A DNA stretch of 64,000 nt from Tetramitus jugosus (GCA_937625935.1 OW569370.1:1-64000), one strand, 5' to 3'; numbered from the stretch's first letter, positions 1 through 10,539 are shown. The notes: generated by a model from the letters alone, not told the origin. Translations and numbers: made by a program.

Positions 1-887
1 CCAAACCCAACCCAAACCCAAACCCAAACCCAAACCCAAACCCAAACCCAAACCCAAACCCAAACCCCAAACCCAAACCCAAACCCAAACCCAAACCCAA
101 ACCCAAACCCAAACCCAAACCCAAACCCAAACCCAAACCCAAACCCAAACCCAAACCCAAACCCAAACCCAAACCCAAACCCAAACCCAAACCCAAACCC
201 AAACCCAAACCCAAACCCAAACCCAAACCCAAACCCAAACCCAAACCCAAACCCAAACCCAAACCCAAACCCAAACCCAAACCCAAACCCAAACCCAAAC
301 CCAAACCCAAACCCAAACCCAAACCCAAACCCAAACCCAAACCCAAACCCAAACCCAAACCCAAACCCAAACCCAAACCCAAACCCAAACCCAAACCCAA
401 ACCCAAACCCAAACCCAAACCCAAACCCAAACCCAAACCCAAACCCAAACCCAAACCCAAACCCAAACCCAAACCCAAACCCAAACCCAAACCCAAACCC
501 AAACCCAAACCCAAACCCAAACCCAAACCCAAACCCAAACCCAAACCCAAACCCAAACCCAAACCCAAACCCAAACCCAAACCCAAACCCAAACCCAAAC
601 CCAAACCCAAACCCAAACCCAAACCCAAACCCAAACCCAAACCCAAACCCAAACCCAAACCCAAACCCAAACCCAAACCCAAACCCAAACCCAAACCCAA
701 ACCCAAACCCAAACCCAAACCCAAACCCAAACCCAAACCCAAACCCAAACCCAAACCCAAACCCAAACCCAAACCCAAACCCAAACCCAAACCCAAACCA
801 AAACCCAAACCCAAACCCAAACCCAAACCCAAACCCAAACCCAAACCAAAACCAAAACCAAAACCAAAACCCAAACCCAAACCCAAA
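1..887. repeat. Terminal telomeric array (CCCAAA)n / (TTTGGG)n with proximal CCAAAA variants
   Basis: Nearly uninterrupted CCCAAA hexamers from base 1 to 887, with the C-rich strand at the 5' end as expected at a left chromosome end. CCAAAA variants at 798-803 and 846-869. Confidence 0.97.
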
Positions 888-1866
888 TTCACTTTCTTTT
901 CAAAAATCAAAAACTTCATCCAAATTCAAAACAAAATCGATCTATCATCTAAATTCTGATCAAACATGATTAATGAAAGCTCAAATCACTCATTCCATTT
1001 CTTTATCCATCTCTTGACTTTCGCTCCTTACTCTTTGTCGAAAACGGAAATTCTCTCATTCAATGCTCAACATCTGGATGTTTTTGAAGCAATATAGTGA
1101 GTCAATATATGTTGAATGAGTAATCATTCCTACTTCTCTTCAGTTATGATGGGTTGGGTCTGGGTATTCAACTCTGCATTCAAGAAAAACACAAAATTTG
1201 AGTTCTCATACTGTCAGAGTTCAAATCTCTTATAAGAAGAACTTTTGAAAAAGCTTTCCAGTCTATTACATCTATAAATCTGAATTGTCATTCAGAAAAG
1301 CTAGTAGTCTGTATTTCTGACCCTTTGGATCTTCAAGCTAGATTCAGATTTGAAACTTCACTATTTCACTGACTTACAGGATTTTAAAGCGAAAGGTCTC
1401 AATAATACATAGAATATCTGATTCTACTGTGATTCTATAATAAAAACTGCCGATTCTATTCCTAAAAACGCGAAATCAAGTCAGTCAAAATTTCAGAAAC
1501 ATCAAGTCATAAGACATCAAGTCAAAAAATAGAGTTAGTAGGAAATCATGTTAAAAATGATCAAATAATGTCCCAATACTCTGATCTAAAACAAAGAAAT
1601 CATTTGTCACTAGTACGTCTTATCTCCAGTACAGAATCAAAATCGTCTAAAATCTGTTGCAGTTTTACCACTGTTGCCGATAAAAATCTGTTAAATACAG
1701 CACAGATATATCGGCTCTACGAGCCGATAAAGCTCAAATCGAGTTGAAAACCTCGCCAATCTCTTCACCTCAACCAGCTGAAGCTCCTAGAGTAATAAAA
1801 AATCTCAAAAAAAAAATTACTATATAAGGAAATCGTTTCCTTAGGTTGGGGAATCCAGGATGTATC

Positions 1867-4054: not shown

Positions 4055-4860
4055 TCAGAATCGATGGCCCATATTTGCAATGTCCTGCTCAGCCAACTCA
4101 AACACCAAGTGCAAGCACTGAAACATGGTGTCTGCTCGACCGAGTCTCATAGCCATCCATCTTTGCATCGAGCACACCAATTCATGAGTGGGCGAAATGG
4201 TAGATCCAGAGTGCACTCCACAAGAAGGCACCCAAGTCGTCCAATGACACCACTCGGCCCAAACCACCGGCAATATGAACCAGCGCTTGAAGGGAACTGA
4301 TTACTTGGGTGATCGAATCATCAGGACAAGGGTTTCGTCAAGTGGTTGCACATCAGACAAACATTCGTCACTGAGTGTGCTCCTGATTGACAACAGGGTT
4401 TCAATCAAGTGATCAATCTGTTGCAAGTTGGTGACTCGAAGTGGGGGAATGCAGATGCTCTTGTGTTGAGTCGCCAATCGACAAAGATCAAGCTCGAGCA
4501 CTTGTCCCATGGCAATCGTTGTCTGCTCAATTCTTCCACAGTGAGTGCAGCTCAGGCACATGGACTTGCGAATGGTGGGATCACTGATTGCTTGTTCAAT
4601 GATTGGCAAAGTTGTTTCAAGCACAGTTGACTCGAGCATGGAACAAGGTTCAAAAGAGTGGGCTTCTATCATGTCTAACTCGGCACATTGTCATGCCACT
4701 CGTCACAACTGGTGGTGTCACTCGGGAGTGTAAACAGTGTTGGTGAGTGAGGATCCATTTGCCAACAACCATGTTTTCAAGTCATGACACTCGAAGGGTT
4801 TCGAAAAGATAGTTTTGGATTTTGATGATGATTGGCATTCAGGCACCCAAGTGAGCAACC
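4055..4860 (-). pseudogene. Degraded coding remnant, weakly reminiscent of a USP (C19) peptidase
   Basis: Broken frames contain CLSCTHCG...VLELDL, and further on VHSGST...ARCKDGWL*DS, which loosely echo the USP fingers and His box. Several stops and frameshifts. Confidence 0.2.
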
Positions 4861-5041
4861 GACCACTCGCTCACGCGACGATTGATGAAAGAGGGGACAA
4901 GAGAGAGGTCGTACCCATCTGTTACTAGCCAATCCAAAAGCTCCAAGTTTCCAGACTCGTTACTCAATTTTGAGTTCAATCATATTTTTTTTATTGTTTT
5001 TCTCTTTTTTTGCCCTTGTTCATAAACATAAATTCTAGACC

Positions 5042-5705
5042 TTAATTATTTATTAAGCCCTTAATAAAGTATCTATTGTATCCAAACTTGTACTGTGGAG
5101 CAGTAGGCACCTCGTATCCCAATTCTTTGGCAGCACGAATTGGCCAGTTAGGTTCTCTGAGCGATACACGACCAATGAGAACAAGATCAGCCCTCTTATC
5201 TTCAATAAATTTGTTTGCCTTCACTGGATCAGTAATCAAACCAACAGCTCCTGCCAGCACTCCTACTTCATTCACCACTCTCTCGGCGAATGGAACTTGA
5301 TAATTAACGAACTGAGCAAATGCTTTCACCCTGGTGTTAGCTCCAGAAGAGCAATCAATGAGATCAACACCGACATCTTTCAACAATTGAGAAAGCTTGA
5401 CGTGATCATCAACAGTCCAACCTTCTTCGACATAATCCGTAGCAGACAATCTTGTGAACAGTGGTAACTCATCAGGAATGGCAGCTCTAACTCTCTCACA
5501 AATTCGTACAATCAGTCTAGTTCTGTTCTCAAAGCTTCCTCCATACTCATCTGTCCTAAAGTTTGACAACGGGGAGTAAAAGTTGTGTAGCAAGTAACAT
5601 TGGTGCAATAGCAATTCTATTCTTTAGTGTGCGACCACGAATGGTCAATGGAGTGAATAGAGCAGGCACTTGTTTTTCTTGTTGAAGTTCTTGTTGTGCA
5701 GTCAT
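5042..5705 (-). pseudogene. Old Yellow Enzyme (NADH:flavin oxidoreductase, YqjM/NamA-like) pseudogene with an internal deletion
   Basis: ATG at 5705 gives MTAQQELQQEKQVPALFTPLTIRGRTLKNRIAIAPM, the OYE N-terminus. It is joined out of frame at ~5597 to YLLHNFYSPLSNFRTDEYGGSFENR...DLIDCSSG...ADLVLIGR, the OYE C-terminal half. Confidence 0.9.
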
Positions 5706-6149
5706 TGTTGTTTTCTTGTGTTAGGGTTAAGTTTTTCTTTGTTGTTTTGTTGTTATTTGTTCTTGGACTATGCAAGAAGCAATTTTAAAGGTGGCAAATT
5801 GTGCGCAATCGACCACCTTTTGCCACCTTCTGGAAGTTAGGACATTCGCTGCGGAAGACAGAAGCCACGACATTCGTTCAAATGCGGGTATCGGTATTAA
5901 GTATTTAACACTCAGTTACCGGTCACTTACGGAAGCATGATTGCACACAATTGGGAGAGCTTCGATCACGCGTGACAATGGCCAAAAATACAACCGATCA
6001 TGATCCGAGTATGACAATAATTATTAATCGACAAATGAAAAGGAAAAGATCAAATATGTTGACAACGATGATGCGTCTTTCAATTCTTGCCCCATGAAAT
6101 TCGATGGAAATCTTCGACAGTCAATCGATTTGTGTACCAGCATTTTGCC

Positions 6150-6270
6150 TTTATTGAAATGATACATTGAACCTTTGGAAACAAATGGCACATTCCAACT
6201 AGTCTAGAGCCCCAGTAGGGTTAGACATATAATGCCGTAGGCTGGCAAGGGAATCTATTGACTTCCACTA
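6150..6270 (-). ncRNA. Putative Fanzor omegaRNA (scaffold plus flank-derived guide)
   Basis: Lies directly 3' of the Fanzor stop. Four consecutive stems (GGAAgTC/GATTCC, TGCC/GGCA, GTCTA/TAGAC, TTGGAA/TTCCAA) and a possible AGCCU:AGGUU pseudoknot ending at 6170. Confidence 0.45.
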
Positions 6271-6276
6271 TTACAC

Positions 6277-7243
6277 TTACAAAGGAACTTGATCAATATG
6301 TTTCTGGCAAGGCATCACATGGCGCAACAAAACAACCAATCCATGATCGATTCCATGATTTGTCGGAACCTGTAATGGGACCACGTGCACATCTGACTTG
6401 CAGTCTTGCTTCGAATTTTTCGCTCTCCTCTTGATCATCGTAATTCTCACACAAGTACTTACTGATCTTGTGATGGGCATCCTTGACTTCTTCAGCATCG
6501 CTTTCCTCATGTTCTGTCTCTTCTTATGATTGAACTCATAGGCTTGACTTTCCTTTTTCTGGTTCATTTAAATCTTGTCTGCCCGATACAGATGTTTGAA
6601 GATTCGATCCATTCCTTTACTGCCAAACTCGATGGAGGATCCATCGGTAGCATAACCAGTCATGAAGGCCCTCACTCCAGGATCTAAAGACATGACATTC
6701 TTAAAGGTGTTTGGCACTTCCTTCAGTTTGTCTAACGGCTTCAACATGATGACATAGAATCGACCAATGGAGTCCTTGATAATTCTAGTGTTATACTGGA
6801 TGTCAACTGGAAATTTGCTCTTGGTTTTGATCTCTCTGAGCCAAGAAGCACTTCCATCATCATTCCAGTGTCTGTAGCGAAGAAGGATTCTGTCAATTTC
6901 TTCTTTTTGCTCTTGAATTTCATTTGAAACATCGTCACCTCTGCAAACACCTTAGCCTTTAACGCCTTTCCTTTCAAGCCCTGAGCTCTCAGTCTGACCT
7001 CTGCTTTCTGTAACTTTTCCTTGTGGACTTTCAGTGCTTGTTGGGTTTCCACGTCTTGTCTTCCTGTTTTTTGAGCATAAACTTGTTATAAAAGTCAACA
7101 CATTGGTTATACACCCAACGATAAATTCCCATCCACTGATTCAATTTCTTCCTCTCTTCATTGTTGGGATACAATCTTATCTTCCAGGCTTTTACAACCT
7201 CAACTTTCTTACGAGCCTTGGTAGTGACCCTGTTCTTCTTCAT
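6277..7243 (-). pseudogene. tnpB: Fanzor2/TnpB RNA-guided endonuclease pseudogene
   Basis: Read across frames: KAWKIRLYPNNEERKKLNQWMGIYRWVYNQC (N-terminal HTH_OrfB-like), FQMKFKSKK, GRFYVI, VMSLDPGVRAFMTGY (RuvC-I, Asp codon 6682-6684), VKDAHHKISKYLCENYD, RKIRSKTASQMCTWSHYRFRQ, VLLRH. In-frame TAA at 6568-6570, several frameshifts. RuvC-II Glu segment, Zn finger and RuvC-III are not found. Confidence 0.9.
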
Positions 7244-7500
7244 CGCCTCGAGCCTCTCGTTCTTCTTCTCTTATTTTCTGCAGCACGTCGTCCACTATTT
7301 CTTGCAACGAACACACTGATGACTGAGAGGGCTTTGGACAATTCATCTTCTGATGAAGTTTGCCCTGCTTCATCTTCACTGTGAATCAGCAATTTTGTTT
7401 GAAACTTTGGGTAGATTTGTTCAAGTAATTGGTATCCAAATCGACACAGTCTGTCTTTGCGCATGACCACAGTTTCTGAGACAAGCTTTTGAATCGTTGC
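7240..7500 (-). pseudogene. tnpA: IS607-type serine recombinase (TnpA), C-terminal remnant
   Basis: ATIQKLVSETVVMRKDRLCRFGYQLLEQI...SEDELSKALSVISVFVARNSGRR matches the IS607 resolvase DRLxRFG and EELxxDLLxIxxVFSARxxG pattern. In-frame TGA upstream at ~7505; HTH and catalytic YARVS not found. Confidence 0.85.
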
Positions 7501-7873
7501 GAATCATGCAAGAGAGGGTTGAGAAGCAAAAACTTAAAAGACAATTGAAGAGGAAAAGGGAGTTGGAAAAAATGTGGGAAAGCTATCAAACCACCTTCAG
7601 AGTAACAGGTTTTGGTTTTCCTTTCTGACAGTGTTTTGTCTAAGCTAAGATGGTTTTAAAGCATTTTACGATGTTGCAGAATCCGATTGTATGTAAAAGT
7701 AGCAGAGGACAATGTTGAAATTCCAACGAACTCAATCAATGCTGAATGATATCCCTTTGTTTGTTAAAGCTTCTTTGTTGAATGTGAATAAACAATGCTC
7801 AGCCACGGACTCAGTTTCGACTGTGTTTTTATCGTGAATTCACATACTCTACACACTGCTTTCTTGGCACATA

Positions 7874-8722
7874 CTAGACCGTTTCCTTTTTTCCAACACC
7901 TACCACAATCGCCGCGTTGTTCTCTTTGCCGTTTTTCTCTGCCTGTCTGAAGAATTCTTCCTCTCCTAATTCAGAAAACTTCTGTGCTGGGTTGCTCAAC
8001 CACTTTTCCCAATGAGCTTGGACTCGAGAAACCTTGTATCCTGCTGCTGTCATTGTATTGCCTAGAAGCATTTCATTCCAAGTGTACAAATGGTTGTTCT
8101 TATCATGTGGAACCCATATCTGTGGGTTTGATTCATGTTTGACAGTAACCACAAGAGTTCCACCTTCTTTCAGTTTGTAATAGAGTCTTCTCAACTCTAG
8201 TACTGGATTTTCCACATGTTCAAGGACCGATGTTGTAACAACGATATCGATACTCTCATCTGGTAGATCTTGGCTATACTTTACGAAAGTGATATCTGGA
8301 TAAGTCTTCGCCGCTTCTTCACGAGCAATATCATTCAACTCCACACCATATTTTTGACTACATTTCTTCATGTTGGCTATGACAGCTCCAGACGAACTTC
8401 CGAACTCAGCACACACAGCTCCTTCCTCTACATAATCTCTCCAGTATCTTTGTTTGAATTTACCACCAAATACGTTCAAACTTCTCTGCCAAGCATAGTA
8501 TTTTGAATCATAATGAGTAACACTAGTCGATGTGTCGTCCCTTTGAGTGGCTGCAGCATCTTTCAGGTTGTTCAACTGCTTCTGTAGATGTCCAATTTCA
8601 TCCTTGAGGGAAACTGTTTGGTTTTTTCTCCAAAGAGAGATTGAGAAGAGCAAGAAGATTGTAATTAGAGCTGATGCTACAATGAGCAACACTGGTTGTC
8701 TTTTGAGGGTTAGATGGTTCAT
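7874..8722 (-). CDS. Type II membrane class I SAM-dependent methyltransferase
   Basis: N-terminal signal anchor and coiled stem, motif I variant CAEFGSSSG, YGVELN, DIVVTTSVLEHVENP...LKEGGTLVV. Single exon. Confidence 0.85.
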   Translation of the reverse strand: MNHLTLKRQPVLLIVASALITIFLLFSISLWRKNQTVSLKDEIGHLQKQLNNLKDAAATQRDDTSTSVTHYDSKYYAWQRSLNVFGGKFKQRYWRDYVEEGAVCAEFGSSSGAVIANMKKCSQKYGVELNDIAREEAAKTYPDITFVKYSQDLPDESIDIVVTTSVLEHVENPVLELRRLYYKLKEGGTLVVTVKHESNPQIWVPHDKNNHLYTWNEMLLGNTMTAAGYKVSRVQAHWEKWLSNPAQKFSELGEEEFFRQAEKNGKENNAAIVVGVGKKETV

Positions 8723-9261
8723 GGTTTGTTGGGAAGTGGTTTGTTTTCTATCGGGAGTGAACGAGTCCGAAGCCTTCCTCTTTTAAGGGGAAAGACAATT
8801 CTGACTGGACACCCCTTTCAGCCTCAAACAAGATATGATGTTTTCATGTCACTTGCTCTTTGTTTGTTCGTCGTCCAATCTATTTTACAACGCACAGAAC
8901 TTTCTAGGAGGTAGAAAACTCGTTCGCTGAAGGTTAAATACACATTCACTGTTGTTTTTGCGAAAGGGATTTGGGTTGTAAAATATTAGAAATACACGAA
9001 CATAAGAAACTAGAAAATGTCAGCTACGCAAGAAAGAAGCATAACAAGGTAAAAAGAACTAGGATAATACGTCATGATGGGGTTATGAACCTCGAATCAA
9101 ATTACAAAGCGCGAGCAAACCCTCCTGCAAAAATCGAAAAAAACTGGACACATCTTTCAAATGGTTATTGTAAGTTTGTCGAACAGAGTCTCCACCGTTA
9201 AATGATACCTCGTTGCATTGTCCATCATCAATGTATCTCGTCTACTAGAGTTGAGACTTTA

Positions 9262-10539
9262 CTAACGACATAATCTACAATCATCCATTTTGGTTGCCTC
9301 ACACAAACACGGAGGATCAGTTAGTCTAGGTCTTCTCTTCTGAACAAATCGATGCATGAGAACTTTCTTGCCACCTTGAAAGTGGAGCCCTAGTGCAGGA
9401 ATTAGAGGTAGTGTGTCAAATCTTCTAAAGTATGGAAAATGGTTGACCCAGAACACAACCTTAGTTCTATCCTCATTCATAGCATACTGTTGCTCTGGAT
9501 CTTGATTGAAGTTGTGATCAAACACTCCCAAATCTCTCCTATACTTGACTCCATTCACTGTTTCCTCTCCATACGTGGAATTAAATTGTTCGTCTTCATA
9601 TCGCATTACCGGCGCAAGATATGTTTCACTTCTTGCCAGAGAAACTGGCACATGTGATGTTTGTAGTTGACTCCAAGGAAACGCTGAACCAAAGCGAGAA
9701 TACTCCTGACAGTCCTGTTTCGACCCGACAACCCAGCATTGCTCATCATAGTCAAATGTTTCATTTCGCAGATGTAACCTGTCGTTTATCGCTTTGTATG
9801 AGTAGTATCTGAGAAACCACATGTCGTTGTACACTTGATTATCTCCAACTAATCTCAGTTTTGTCATCCCCACCCTGATAAACTGGTCAATCTCTTTGAG
9901 GGCTCTCTGGCTCATGATCGAACAATGGGCCGAGATCCTGGGTGGAAGGAACGACAAGTACAAATCAGTGTGAGTGGGATGTGCTTGGACATACTCAGTC
10001 ATGTTCGTAAACAATAGAAAATCATGATCTAAGGCTGCAATGAACTCAATGTGGTAATCTTCCATAAATCTCAACAACACAAGCCATCTCTGGAAACATA
10101 TGAATTCGAACTTCCATTTGGATTCTTTTGCCATATCTGGCTTCTGGGAAAAGTAAACATGTTTGAATTCTTCAGTATCACTCCTATTTAGATATGGAGC
10201 CAAGTCGACCACCTTAACATTTGTCCAAGGGAAACTTGCCCTATTCTCCTCGACAAAAGCTGCCAACAAGTCACAACCAAGAAGGATGATTCGATCATTG
10301 TACAGGGCTGCTTGAGTGACAGAAGTGAGTAAAACTGAATCGATGCCTTTGATGCATGGGTAAGCAAGGCTCTCAACATAGAAAACAATGGGTATATTGC
10401 CAAAGGAAGACGAAAGAGTGGGAAGCCCAACCAAGTCCGCTATTTTGTCGTCTTTCTGGAAGAACGCAATACCGAGCATCACCAGGAACACAACTCCCAT
10501 TACCAGAATAACAAGTTTAACAAGTACATGTTTCTTCAT
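9262..10539 (-). CDS. Type II membrane protein, probable GT-A-like glycosyltransferase
   Basis: N-terminal TM, FICFQRWLVL, DHD (DxD) motif in ALDHDFLLF, NDM, C-terminal LHFQG. Single exon. Confidence 0.65.
   Translation of the reverse strand: MKKHVLVKLVILVMGVVFLVMLGIAFFQKDDKIADLVGLPTLSSSFGNIPIVFYVESLAYPCIKGIDSVLLTSVTQAALYNDRIILLGCDLLAAFVEENRASFPWTNVKVVDLAPYLNRSDTEEFKHVYFSQKPDMAKESKWKFEFICFQRWLVLLRFMEDYHIEFIAALDHDFLLFTNMTEYVQAHPTHTDLYLSFLPPRISAHCSIMSQRALKEIDQFIRVGMTKLRLVGDNQVYNDMWFLRYYSYKAINDRLHLRNETFDYDEQCWVVGSKQDCQEYSRFGSAFPWSQLQTSHVPVSLARSETYLAPVMRYEDEQFNSTYGEETVNGVKYRRDLGVFDHNFNQDPEQQYAMNEDRTKVVFWVNHFPYFRRFDTLPLIPALGLHFQGGKKVLMHRFVQKRRPRLTDPPCLCEATKMDDCRLCR

Follow-up and report, generated by a model that had tools for sequence, protein, structure and literature searches.

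The locus analysed here lies near the end of a chromosome of the protist Tetramitus jugosus, in a window of 64,000 nucleotides (GCA_937625935.1, OW569370.1:1-64000) whose positions we count from the window start. The window opens with a telomere tract, and its genes are ordinary eukaryotic ones, such as those for coatomer beta, kinesin and aminopeptidase P. About 5.3-6.6 kb inward from the telomere tract, on the minus strand, positions 6147-7503 carry the decayed remains of an IS607-type transposon with a gene for a Fanzor2 nuclease. Read from 5' to 3' on that strand, the relic is made of a 3' fragment of tnpA, a Fanzor2 pseudogene and a non-coding tail that stops at the element's right end (RE; Table 1). 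Its guanine-cytosine (GC) content equals the genome average. The genes that flank it, an old yellow enzyme (OYE) gene and a methyltransferase gene, have paralogues elsewhere in the host, on contig 43 and contig 13, respectively.

An initial annotation of this DNA had described a dead unit of IS607 tnpA and Fanzor2 in a subtelomeric position, at 6170-7505 and in at least five reading-frame pieces. Its motifs were all recovered on the minus strand, far above chance level; the boundaries move to 6147-7503, and the pieces number 7-8 and are collinear. That the copy is dead is borne out by frameshifts, a stop, deletions and a truncation of tnpA, and its subtelomeric place in a real eukaryotic chromosome by the telomere, the coatomer and kinesin genes and an independent read contig. 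An independent assembly of reads from two runs of this organism gave contigs that reproduce the locus. Among these, a contig of 3794 bp shows 0 differences from the window over 4300-7553, so the breaks in the nuclease gene are not assembly errors.

Table 1 Features of the IS607/Fanzor2 locus, in positions of the window.
Feature	Position	Strand	Basis
Telomere tract, CCCAAA/TTTGGG	1..890	.	sequence; GC skew -0.61 in first 2 kb
RE terminus, TTTCAATAAAGGC	6147..6159	-	shared with closest intact relatives; blastn E 0.002
Decayed 3' non-coding tail, putative remnant of guide-RNA (omegaRNA) scaffold and RE	6147..6254	-	homology, fold score
Fanzor2 (TnpB-like) pseudogene	6255..7243	-	profiles, tblastn, frameshift-aware alignment
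C-terminal remnant ARNILIKFL	6258-6311 (match at 6308-6282)	-	weak, E 0.15
Downstream pieces	6496-6567, 6437-6493, 6348-6434, 6317-6346	-	alignment to P0151
TAA stop	6568-6570	-	frameshift-aware alignment
WED/RuvC-I piece with DPG	6571-6876	-	alignment to P0151
RuvC-I DPG motif (SLDPGVRAF)	about 6676..6684	-	aligns to mimivirus L79 DPG via P0151
Recognition-lobe (REC) helix, Lys-rich piece	6879-7073	-	alignment to P0151
Helix-turn-helix (HTH) piece	7076-7243	-	PF12323 HTH_OrfB_IS605, E 1.7e-11
ATGA overlap: tnpA stop TGA and ATG in Fanzor2 frame	7240..7243	-	sequence
IS607 serine-recombinase tnpA, 3' fragment	7243..7503	-	profile and tblastn homology over 7261-7485

Four motifs of the nuclease are spread over its pieces on the minus strand: KIRLYP in 7034-7270, SLDPGVRAFMTGY with the DPG at about 6676-6684, HHKISKYLCENYD in 6296-6523 and KTASQMCTWSHYRF in 6318-6434. 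All database searches were made with single pieces, never with a joined, mended or consensus sequence, and the profiles agree with the identification: the N-terminal piece matches HTH_OrfB_IS605 (PF12323, E 1.7e-11), its sole such match in the genome, and the tnpA fragment matches the IS607 transposase profile NF033518 (E 3e-10). A 127-aa RuvC-I piece with SLDPGV has 303 relatives among 1.84 billion proteins, at a best E of 2e-30; alone, the same piece gave no match to solved structures. The DPG of RuvC-I has been described as a Fanzor signature (bioRxiv 10.1101/2023.08.09.552727), and D-X-[TS][TS]-X-X-C4-X-RD as a signature of Fanzor and TnpB proteins (PMC3627910).

The damage was counted against P0151, the closest intact relative (440 aa as called, from a metagenome contig), which tblastn places on the relic with an E of 4.5e-45. 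A frameshift-aware alignment of P0151 with the DNA covers 313 aligned codons at 55% identity and reveals five frameshifts (near 7075, 6878, 6495, 6436 and 6347; one of them near a run of A), one stop and at least four deletions. Most of residues 62-117 of P0151, then 298-305 and 326-338, have no counterpart in the relic. By tblastn an additional block is gone, at about 379-416 of P0151, where the latter reads TEHYTSKTCSHC...CKRC...DRD: it comprises the C-terminally shifted RuvC-II Glu, the C4 zinc ribbon and the RuvC-III Asp. Two of the three catalytic residues are thus lost, and the Asp of the RuvC-I DPG is the sole one left. Because this block is deleted, the relic belongs to Fanzor2 by descent, as a degraded member, and not as a functional one. 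The weak ARNILIKFL match and the conserved tail persist beyond the gap, which suggests that the block was deleted from within the gene and that the 3' end was not truncated. With one stop in 313 codons and many insertions and deletions, the gene appears to have decayed through deletions, and the pseudogene would be fairly young in terms of substitutions.

The Lys-rich segment that follows the first helix had been taken for a family-specific insert. It is conserved in relatives, with 53% identity to residues 118-168 of P0151 and 41% to residues 323-373 of another relative, P0008, and hence is a segment of the family: a recognition-lobe helix, about 7 residues longer than in the mimivirus protein L79.

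The tnpA fragment is an open stretch of 87 codons that keeps about the last 80 codons of the gene, with the motif DRLCRFG at about 7435-7455 (minus strand). It corresponds to positions 116-187 of 187 in NF033518 and to residues 129-206 of the intact 259-aa TnpA encoded on contig L064 (55% identity, E 1e-24). Residues 1-128 of TnpA, the DNA-binding HTH and the catalytic Ser in the YARVSS domain, found no match upstream of 7503, so the element is truncated on its 5' side at about 7489-7503; what is left of tnpA is a fragment and no functional gene. A boundary of a paralogous block at about 7500 was considered as the cause of this truncation and was not found: similarity to the paralogues is confined to the coding parts of the flanking genes. 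The gene order and orientation of IS607 are present, with tnpA directly upstream of the nuclease gene and codirectional with it. In intact relatives tnpA continues past the position of the ATGA overlap, and the Fanzor2 frame is already open a long way upstream of it; judged from these sequences, the ATG within the overlap may be an internal Met of a longer Fanzor2 frame.

On the other side of the pseudogene, the tail is about 108 nt long, and its segment 6178-6214 can be aligned, at 76%, with the tail of L063. The elements L063, L064, L079 and L081-L084 all end in ...AATAAAGGCG, with unrelated flanks beginning immediately beyond; this terminus is found in 5/5 close relatives and in 0/21 distant ones. 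Compared with shuffled sequence, the fold of the relic's tail has a z-score of -0.05, against -3.7, -2.4 and -2.5 for the tails of intact relatives, whose long hairpin is represented here by a 5-bp stem. Since the tail folds no better than shuffled sequence, the guide-RNA scaffold of the relic is best taken for a remnant.

The best solved match of P0151 is mimivirus L79, or ApmFz2 (9b0l), over its full length and with an E of 7e-27; its match to the TnpB of ISDra2 from Deinococcus stands at about 1e-8. We built a quick maximum-likelihood tree, free of mimivirus sequences, for which the pieces of the relic were read through with an X at every break. There the relic joins a clade (support of 97-100 by the Shimodaira-Hasegawa-like approximate likelihood ratio test, SH-aLRT) with P0164, P0151 and P0162, followed by L064 and L080 and then by a Pharyngomonas transcript, separate from cyanobacterial TnpBs and from the Fanzor1 proteins of the host. 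Within the reach of such a quick tree, the relic groups with Fanzor2, apart from both Fanzor1 and cyanobacterial TnpB. By identity, its closest relative is P0164. Named relatives are few: transcripts of Pharyngomonas and Phalansterium, fungal proteins at 26-32% identity and TnpBs of the cyanobacterium Moorena at 25%.

Several relatives sit on contigs of viral appearance or origin. L064 is a contig of 72.7 kb with 29% GC, rich in orphan open reading frames (ORFs), where an intact tnpA stands beside the Fanzor2 gene; on L087, of 141.7 kb, a relative is accompanied by PCNA, an Rpb10-like RNA polymerase subunit, PIF1 and a D5-like helicase. A search of IMG/VR with a TnpA alignment returned 79 loci with a related TnpA, many of them named as metagenome-assembled genomes of giant viruses. 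Single-protein scans of IMG/VR found no close relatives of the relic's pieces; they were reached by the TnpA alignment only. The viral loci agree with a published account in which Fanzor2 and IS607 spread through giant viruses that infect amoebae (PMC10530073). Beside P0164, the stretch L079:2317-5211 holds a 964-aa ORF with a weak Cas12f1-like TNB match.

Among described systems, the relic is closest in kind to the IS607 Fanzor2 elements of giant viruses and amoebae, namely ISvMimi_1/2 with ApmFz2 (L79) and ACa-1/2 of Acanthamoeba (Bao & Jurka 2013, PMC3627910; Jiang et al. 2023, PMC10530073; structure 9b0l, PMC11832414). It has in common with them a Ser-recombinase tnpA upstream of and codirectional with a TnpB-like nuclease gene, the HTH_OrfB_IS605 domain and the DPG of RuvC-I in that nuclease, a conserved non-coding tail up to the right end, and a eukaryote or virus as host; its intact proxy P0151, moreover, aligns to L79 in full length. 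It differs in being dead and 5'-truncated, in its low identity to L79, and in belonging to a separate subclade (P0151, P0164, L064, L080 and Pharyngomonas) with a terminus of its own, AATAAAGGCG. The relic thereby points to a Fanzor2 subclade with naturally intact members, P0151 among them, and a defined right end, both of them directly testable.

The IS607 TnpBs of cyanobacteria that were termed 'pro-Fanzors' (bioRxiv 10.1101/2023.08.09.552727) share the DPG and a RuvC-II Glu whose position has moved to six residues ahead of the zinc finger, a shift that is visible in P0151 (TEHYTSKTC). Proteins of Moorena are detectable as relatives, and this similarity fits the 'pro-Fanzor' idea; unlike the relic, they have a bacterial host, and they stand at 25% identity and in another clade of the quick tree.

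We searched the whole assembly (26.35 Mb, 56 contigs) with the tnpA fragment, the N-terminal HTH piece, the 127-aa RuvC-I piece, the DNA of 5950-7700, PF12323, NF033518, P0151 and an intact TnpA. No second copy of the IS607/Fanzor2 element was found in it: every query matched the relic locus alone. The initial annotation had spoken of a transposon family in this genome, whose recent or active sister copies would allow a new nuclease to be reconstructed. A clean frame within each piece and the single stop in 313 aligned codons do suggest little substitution since inactivation, which would favour such a family, but the searches refute it for this assembly, and we consider it very improbable. Intact relatives exist, in metagenomes and on giant-virus contigs, and none in this genome; with no sister copies, no consensus can be built here and the relic is no source of a new nuclease.

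The profiles PF07282 and NF040570 do match about 28 other places in the genome. Some 25 of these other nucleases of the host are uninterrupted ORFs of 650-685 aa, of the Fanzor1 type and spread through the genome (for example L006 at C16:101481, L009 at C3:522202 and L029 at C27:340776), with SpuFz1 of Spizellomyces (8gkh) as their best solved match. These remaining matches again speak against a Fanzor2 family. With the kind of nuclease seen in the relic they share the RuvC/zinc-ribbon core and a presumed RNA-guided nuclease activity, whereas their identity to P0151 is 24%, in the RuvC core only; they have neither a PF12323 HTH match nor an IS607 tnpA, and they are multi-copy and intact. One frameshifted Fanzor1 copy, L028 (C32:3107-4003), lies about 3 kb from a contig end. 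An isolated match to the PF07282 zinc ribbon was noticed at G000:C39:13858-14037 (E 9e-5), in an open frame of 249 aa about 14 kb from the contig end; P0151 gives no match there.

The left flank of the relic could be compared with that of close relatives from the environment. Contigs from groundwater metagenomes and a soil metatranscriptome are 95-99% identical to it, covering 4300-6136, and diverge from the window at 6064, 6096 or 6136. Except for one unrelated bin at 6805-6971, they give no coverage of 6137-8140. The longest shared left flank ends 10 bp before the inferred right end, which is suggestive of an insertion polymorphism as far as sequence can tell. One groundwater contig joins about 6064 to sequence 90% identical to 9503-9532, within the neighbouring 425-aa glycosyltransferase-like gene, and so skips both the relic and the methyltransferase gene. 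The loose end of another environmental contig has no match in the genome.

The OYE gene of the window (5042-5705, minus strand) lacks about 470 bp at 5597/5598 in comparison with its paralogue on contig 43. In the environmental relatives (95-99% identity) the OYE gene is uninterrupted and carries extra sequence exactly at 5597/5598, so that this deletion is specific to the strain of the window. Evidently, the subtelomere was hit by several deletions and is structurally variable among strains. Just past the truncated 5' side of the relic, at 7553-7660, read contigs break at 7553/7565 and a variant contig has small insertions at 7594-7619; the local depth there is doubled, indicating a short repeat with copies elsewhere.

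Altogether, we read the locus as what is left of one IS607-type transposon, a solitary and non-functional relic of the Fanzor2 kind found in eukaryotes and giant viruses, with a probability of about 0.88. An intact element of this kind would carry tnpA for a serine recombinase, then the Fanzor2 gene for an RNA-guided nuclease, then the guide-RNA tail and the right end. The recombinase would insert it as double-stranded DNA without target duplication, and the nuclease, guided by an RNA transcribed from the right end on into the flank, would cut sites without the element; insertion and cutting are established for relatives and would apply to the relic by analogy. In this genome the left end and the first half of tnpA were lost; the nuclease gene then decayed, mainly by small deletions and frameshifts, the hairpin of the guide RNA degenerated too, and the element never multiplied. 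Arrival by horizontal transfer is most likely, and the source was probably a giant virus, to judge from where relatives occur. The relic would thus record one past arrival of IS607/Fanzor2 in a protist otherwise hosting only Fanzor1, and illustrates deletion-driven decay in a subtelomere; in itself it matters little.

Several points weigh against this reading. As the left end is missing, transposition into the site is not directly demonstrable, and no precise empty site was recovered in the environmental relatives. The join of 6064 to 9503 is more easily seen as a 3.4-kb deletion or rearrangement in the relative concerned than as an empty site, and the breakpoints at 6064, 6096 and 6136 may be a mere reflection of the variable subtelomere. 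The ARNILIKFL match at the C-terminus is weak (E 0.15). As for the source, the giant-virus route rests on the whereabouts of relatives, and the closest one, L063/L078, has a GC content of 41%, equal to that of the host.

The relic might, alternatively, be the last trace of a larger integrated segment of a giant virus instead of the product of transposition into the host chromosome. The presence of relatives on giant-virus contigs and the 5' truncation of the element would suit such an origin, but both flanking genes have host paralogues, the GC content is that of the genome, and the DNA next to the conserved RE terminus is also present in environmental relatives without the element; we hold it unlikely. 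We give very little weight to a bacterial IS607, brought in by contamination or by direct transfer from bacteria: the order of tnpA and tnpB and the ATGA overlap look prokaryotic, and the cyanobacterial TnpBs of Moorena are detectable at 25% identity, yet eukaryotic genes and a telomere stand on the contig, the closest relatives are all associated with eukaryotes or viruses, and the nuclease has the DPG signature of Fanzor and its best solved match in mimivirus L79. It is hardly conceivable that the gene is intact and that its breaks are assembly errors or small introns, even if some eukaryotic Fanzor genes do contain introns (PMC10530073) and one frameshift lies near a run of A. The independent read contigs show 0 differences; introns behind the frame changes were ruled out, as the pieces abut or overlap, which leaves no space for them, and conserved blocks are absent, namely two catalytic residues and the zinc ribbon, with half of tnpA gone as well. 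The neighbouring genes and the roughly 25 Fanzor1 ORFs are, for their part, uninterrupted.

The single transposon relic that we favour leads to a feature of its intact relatives, an overlap of the tnpA and Fanzor2 frames. P0008 is 636 aa long since its frame stays open over the whole of tnpA, and the same is seen in L080-83 and L078. Elements with the overlap are L064:9994-11911, L080-L083, L078:333-1950, L086-L088 and some among L089-L167, the latter from giant-virus contigs of IMG/VR. L086-L088 were picked for their long ORFs and are biased for a test of open frames; L085, the fourth pick, had no TnpA hit. The unbiased sample is that of the 79 giant-virus loci picked by TnpA similarity alone. 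Within the tnpA match, which spans about 180-215 codons, the +1 frame is free of stops in 28/79 of them and the +2 frame, which typically has 10-40 stops, in 0/79. A downstream Fanzor2 is present in 55 loci; its reading frame, which in every case is +1 to that of tnpA, remains open backwards across the whole tnpA match in 28/55, about a dozen more loci have an overlap of 300-520 nt, and the remainder have none.

When tnpA was shuffled among synonymous codons, the probability of no stop in the +1 frame was 4e-4, 1.5e-4 and 5e-3 for three loci with intact tnpA, and up to 0.05 for the shortest spans; the +2 frame behaved as expected by chance. The long frame has its ATG at -5 to +13 nt from the ATG of tnpA in 11/19 loci; its median length is 590 aa, against 213 aa for TnpA. 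A stop interrupts tnpA in two lineages, L080-83 and L078, in both of which the +1 frame is open. The open +1 frame looks like a selected dual-coding arrangement. The long frame may be translated; a single mRNA in the eukaryotic style could then give rise to the two proteins, with leaky scanning as one conceivable route.

A vestige of this layout persists in the window: the +1 frame of its tnpA fragment resembles the N-terminal extension of P0008 (46% identity, one stop), and in the frameshift-aware alignment its junction with the nuclease frame needs a further shift near 7269. By a slight preference, we think that the relic descends from such a dual-coding kind of IS607, with about 200 N-terminal residues of the nuclease overprinted on tnpA in the +1 frame. 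For P0008, this overprinted N-terminus shows no detectable similarity to the structured N-terminal domain of ApmFz2. The extension is mildly basic (K+R 18%, D+E 9%), which is not decisive for a composition like that of a nuclear localization signal. In the papers on Fanzor and IS607 that we consulted we found no mention of overlapping tnpA and Fanzor2 frames, which does not prove them unreported. If translated, the overlap would account for the expression of a bacterial two-gene operon in a eukaryotic setting as well as for the origin of the N-terminal extension of Fanzor2.

The element of P0165 (L080-L083, ENA samples ERZ272933xx) is found, identical in sequence, on over 20 contigs and in three or more different flanking contexts, and codon 150 of its tnpA is a TAA. 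It was either mobilised in trans or spread before this stop in tnpA arose.

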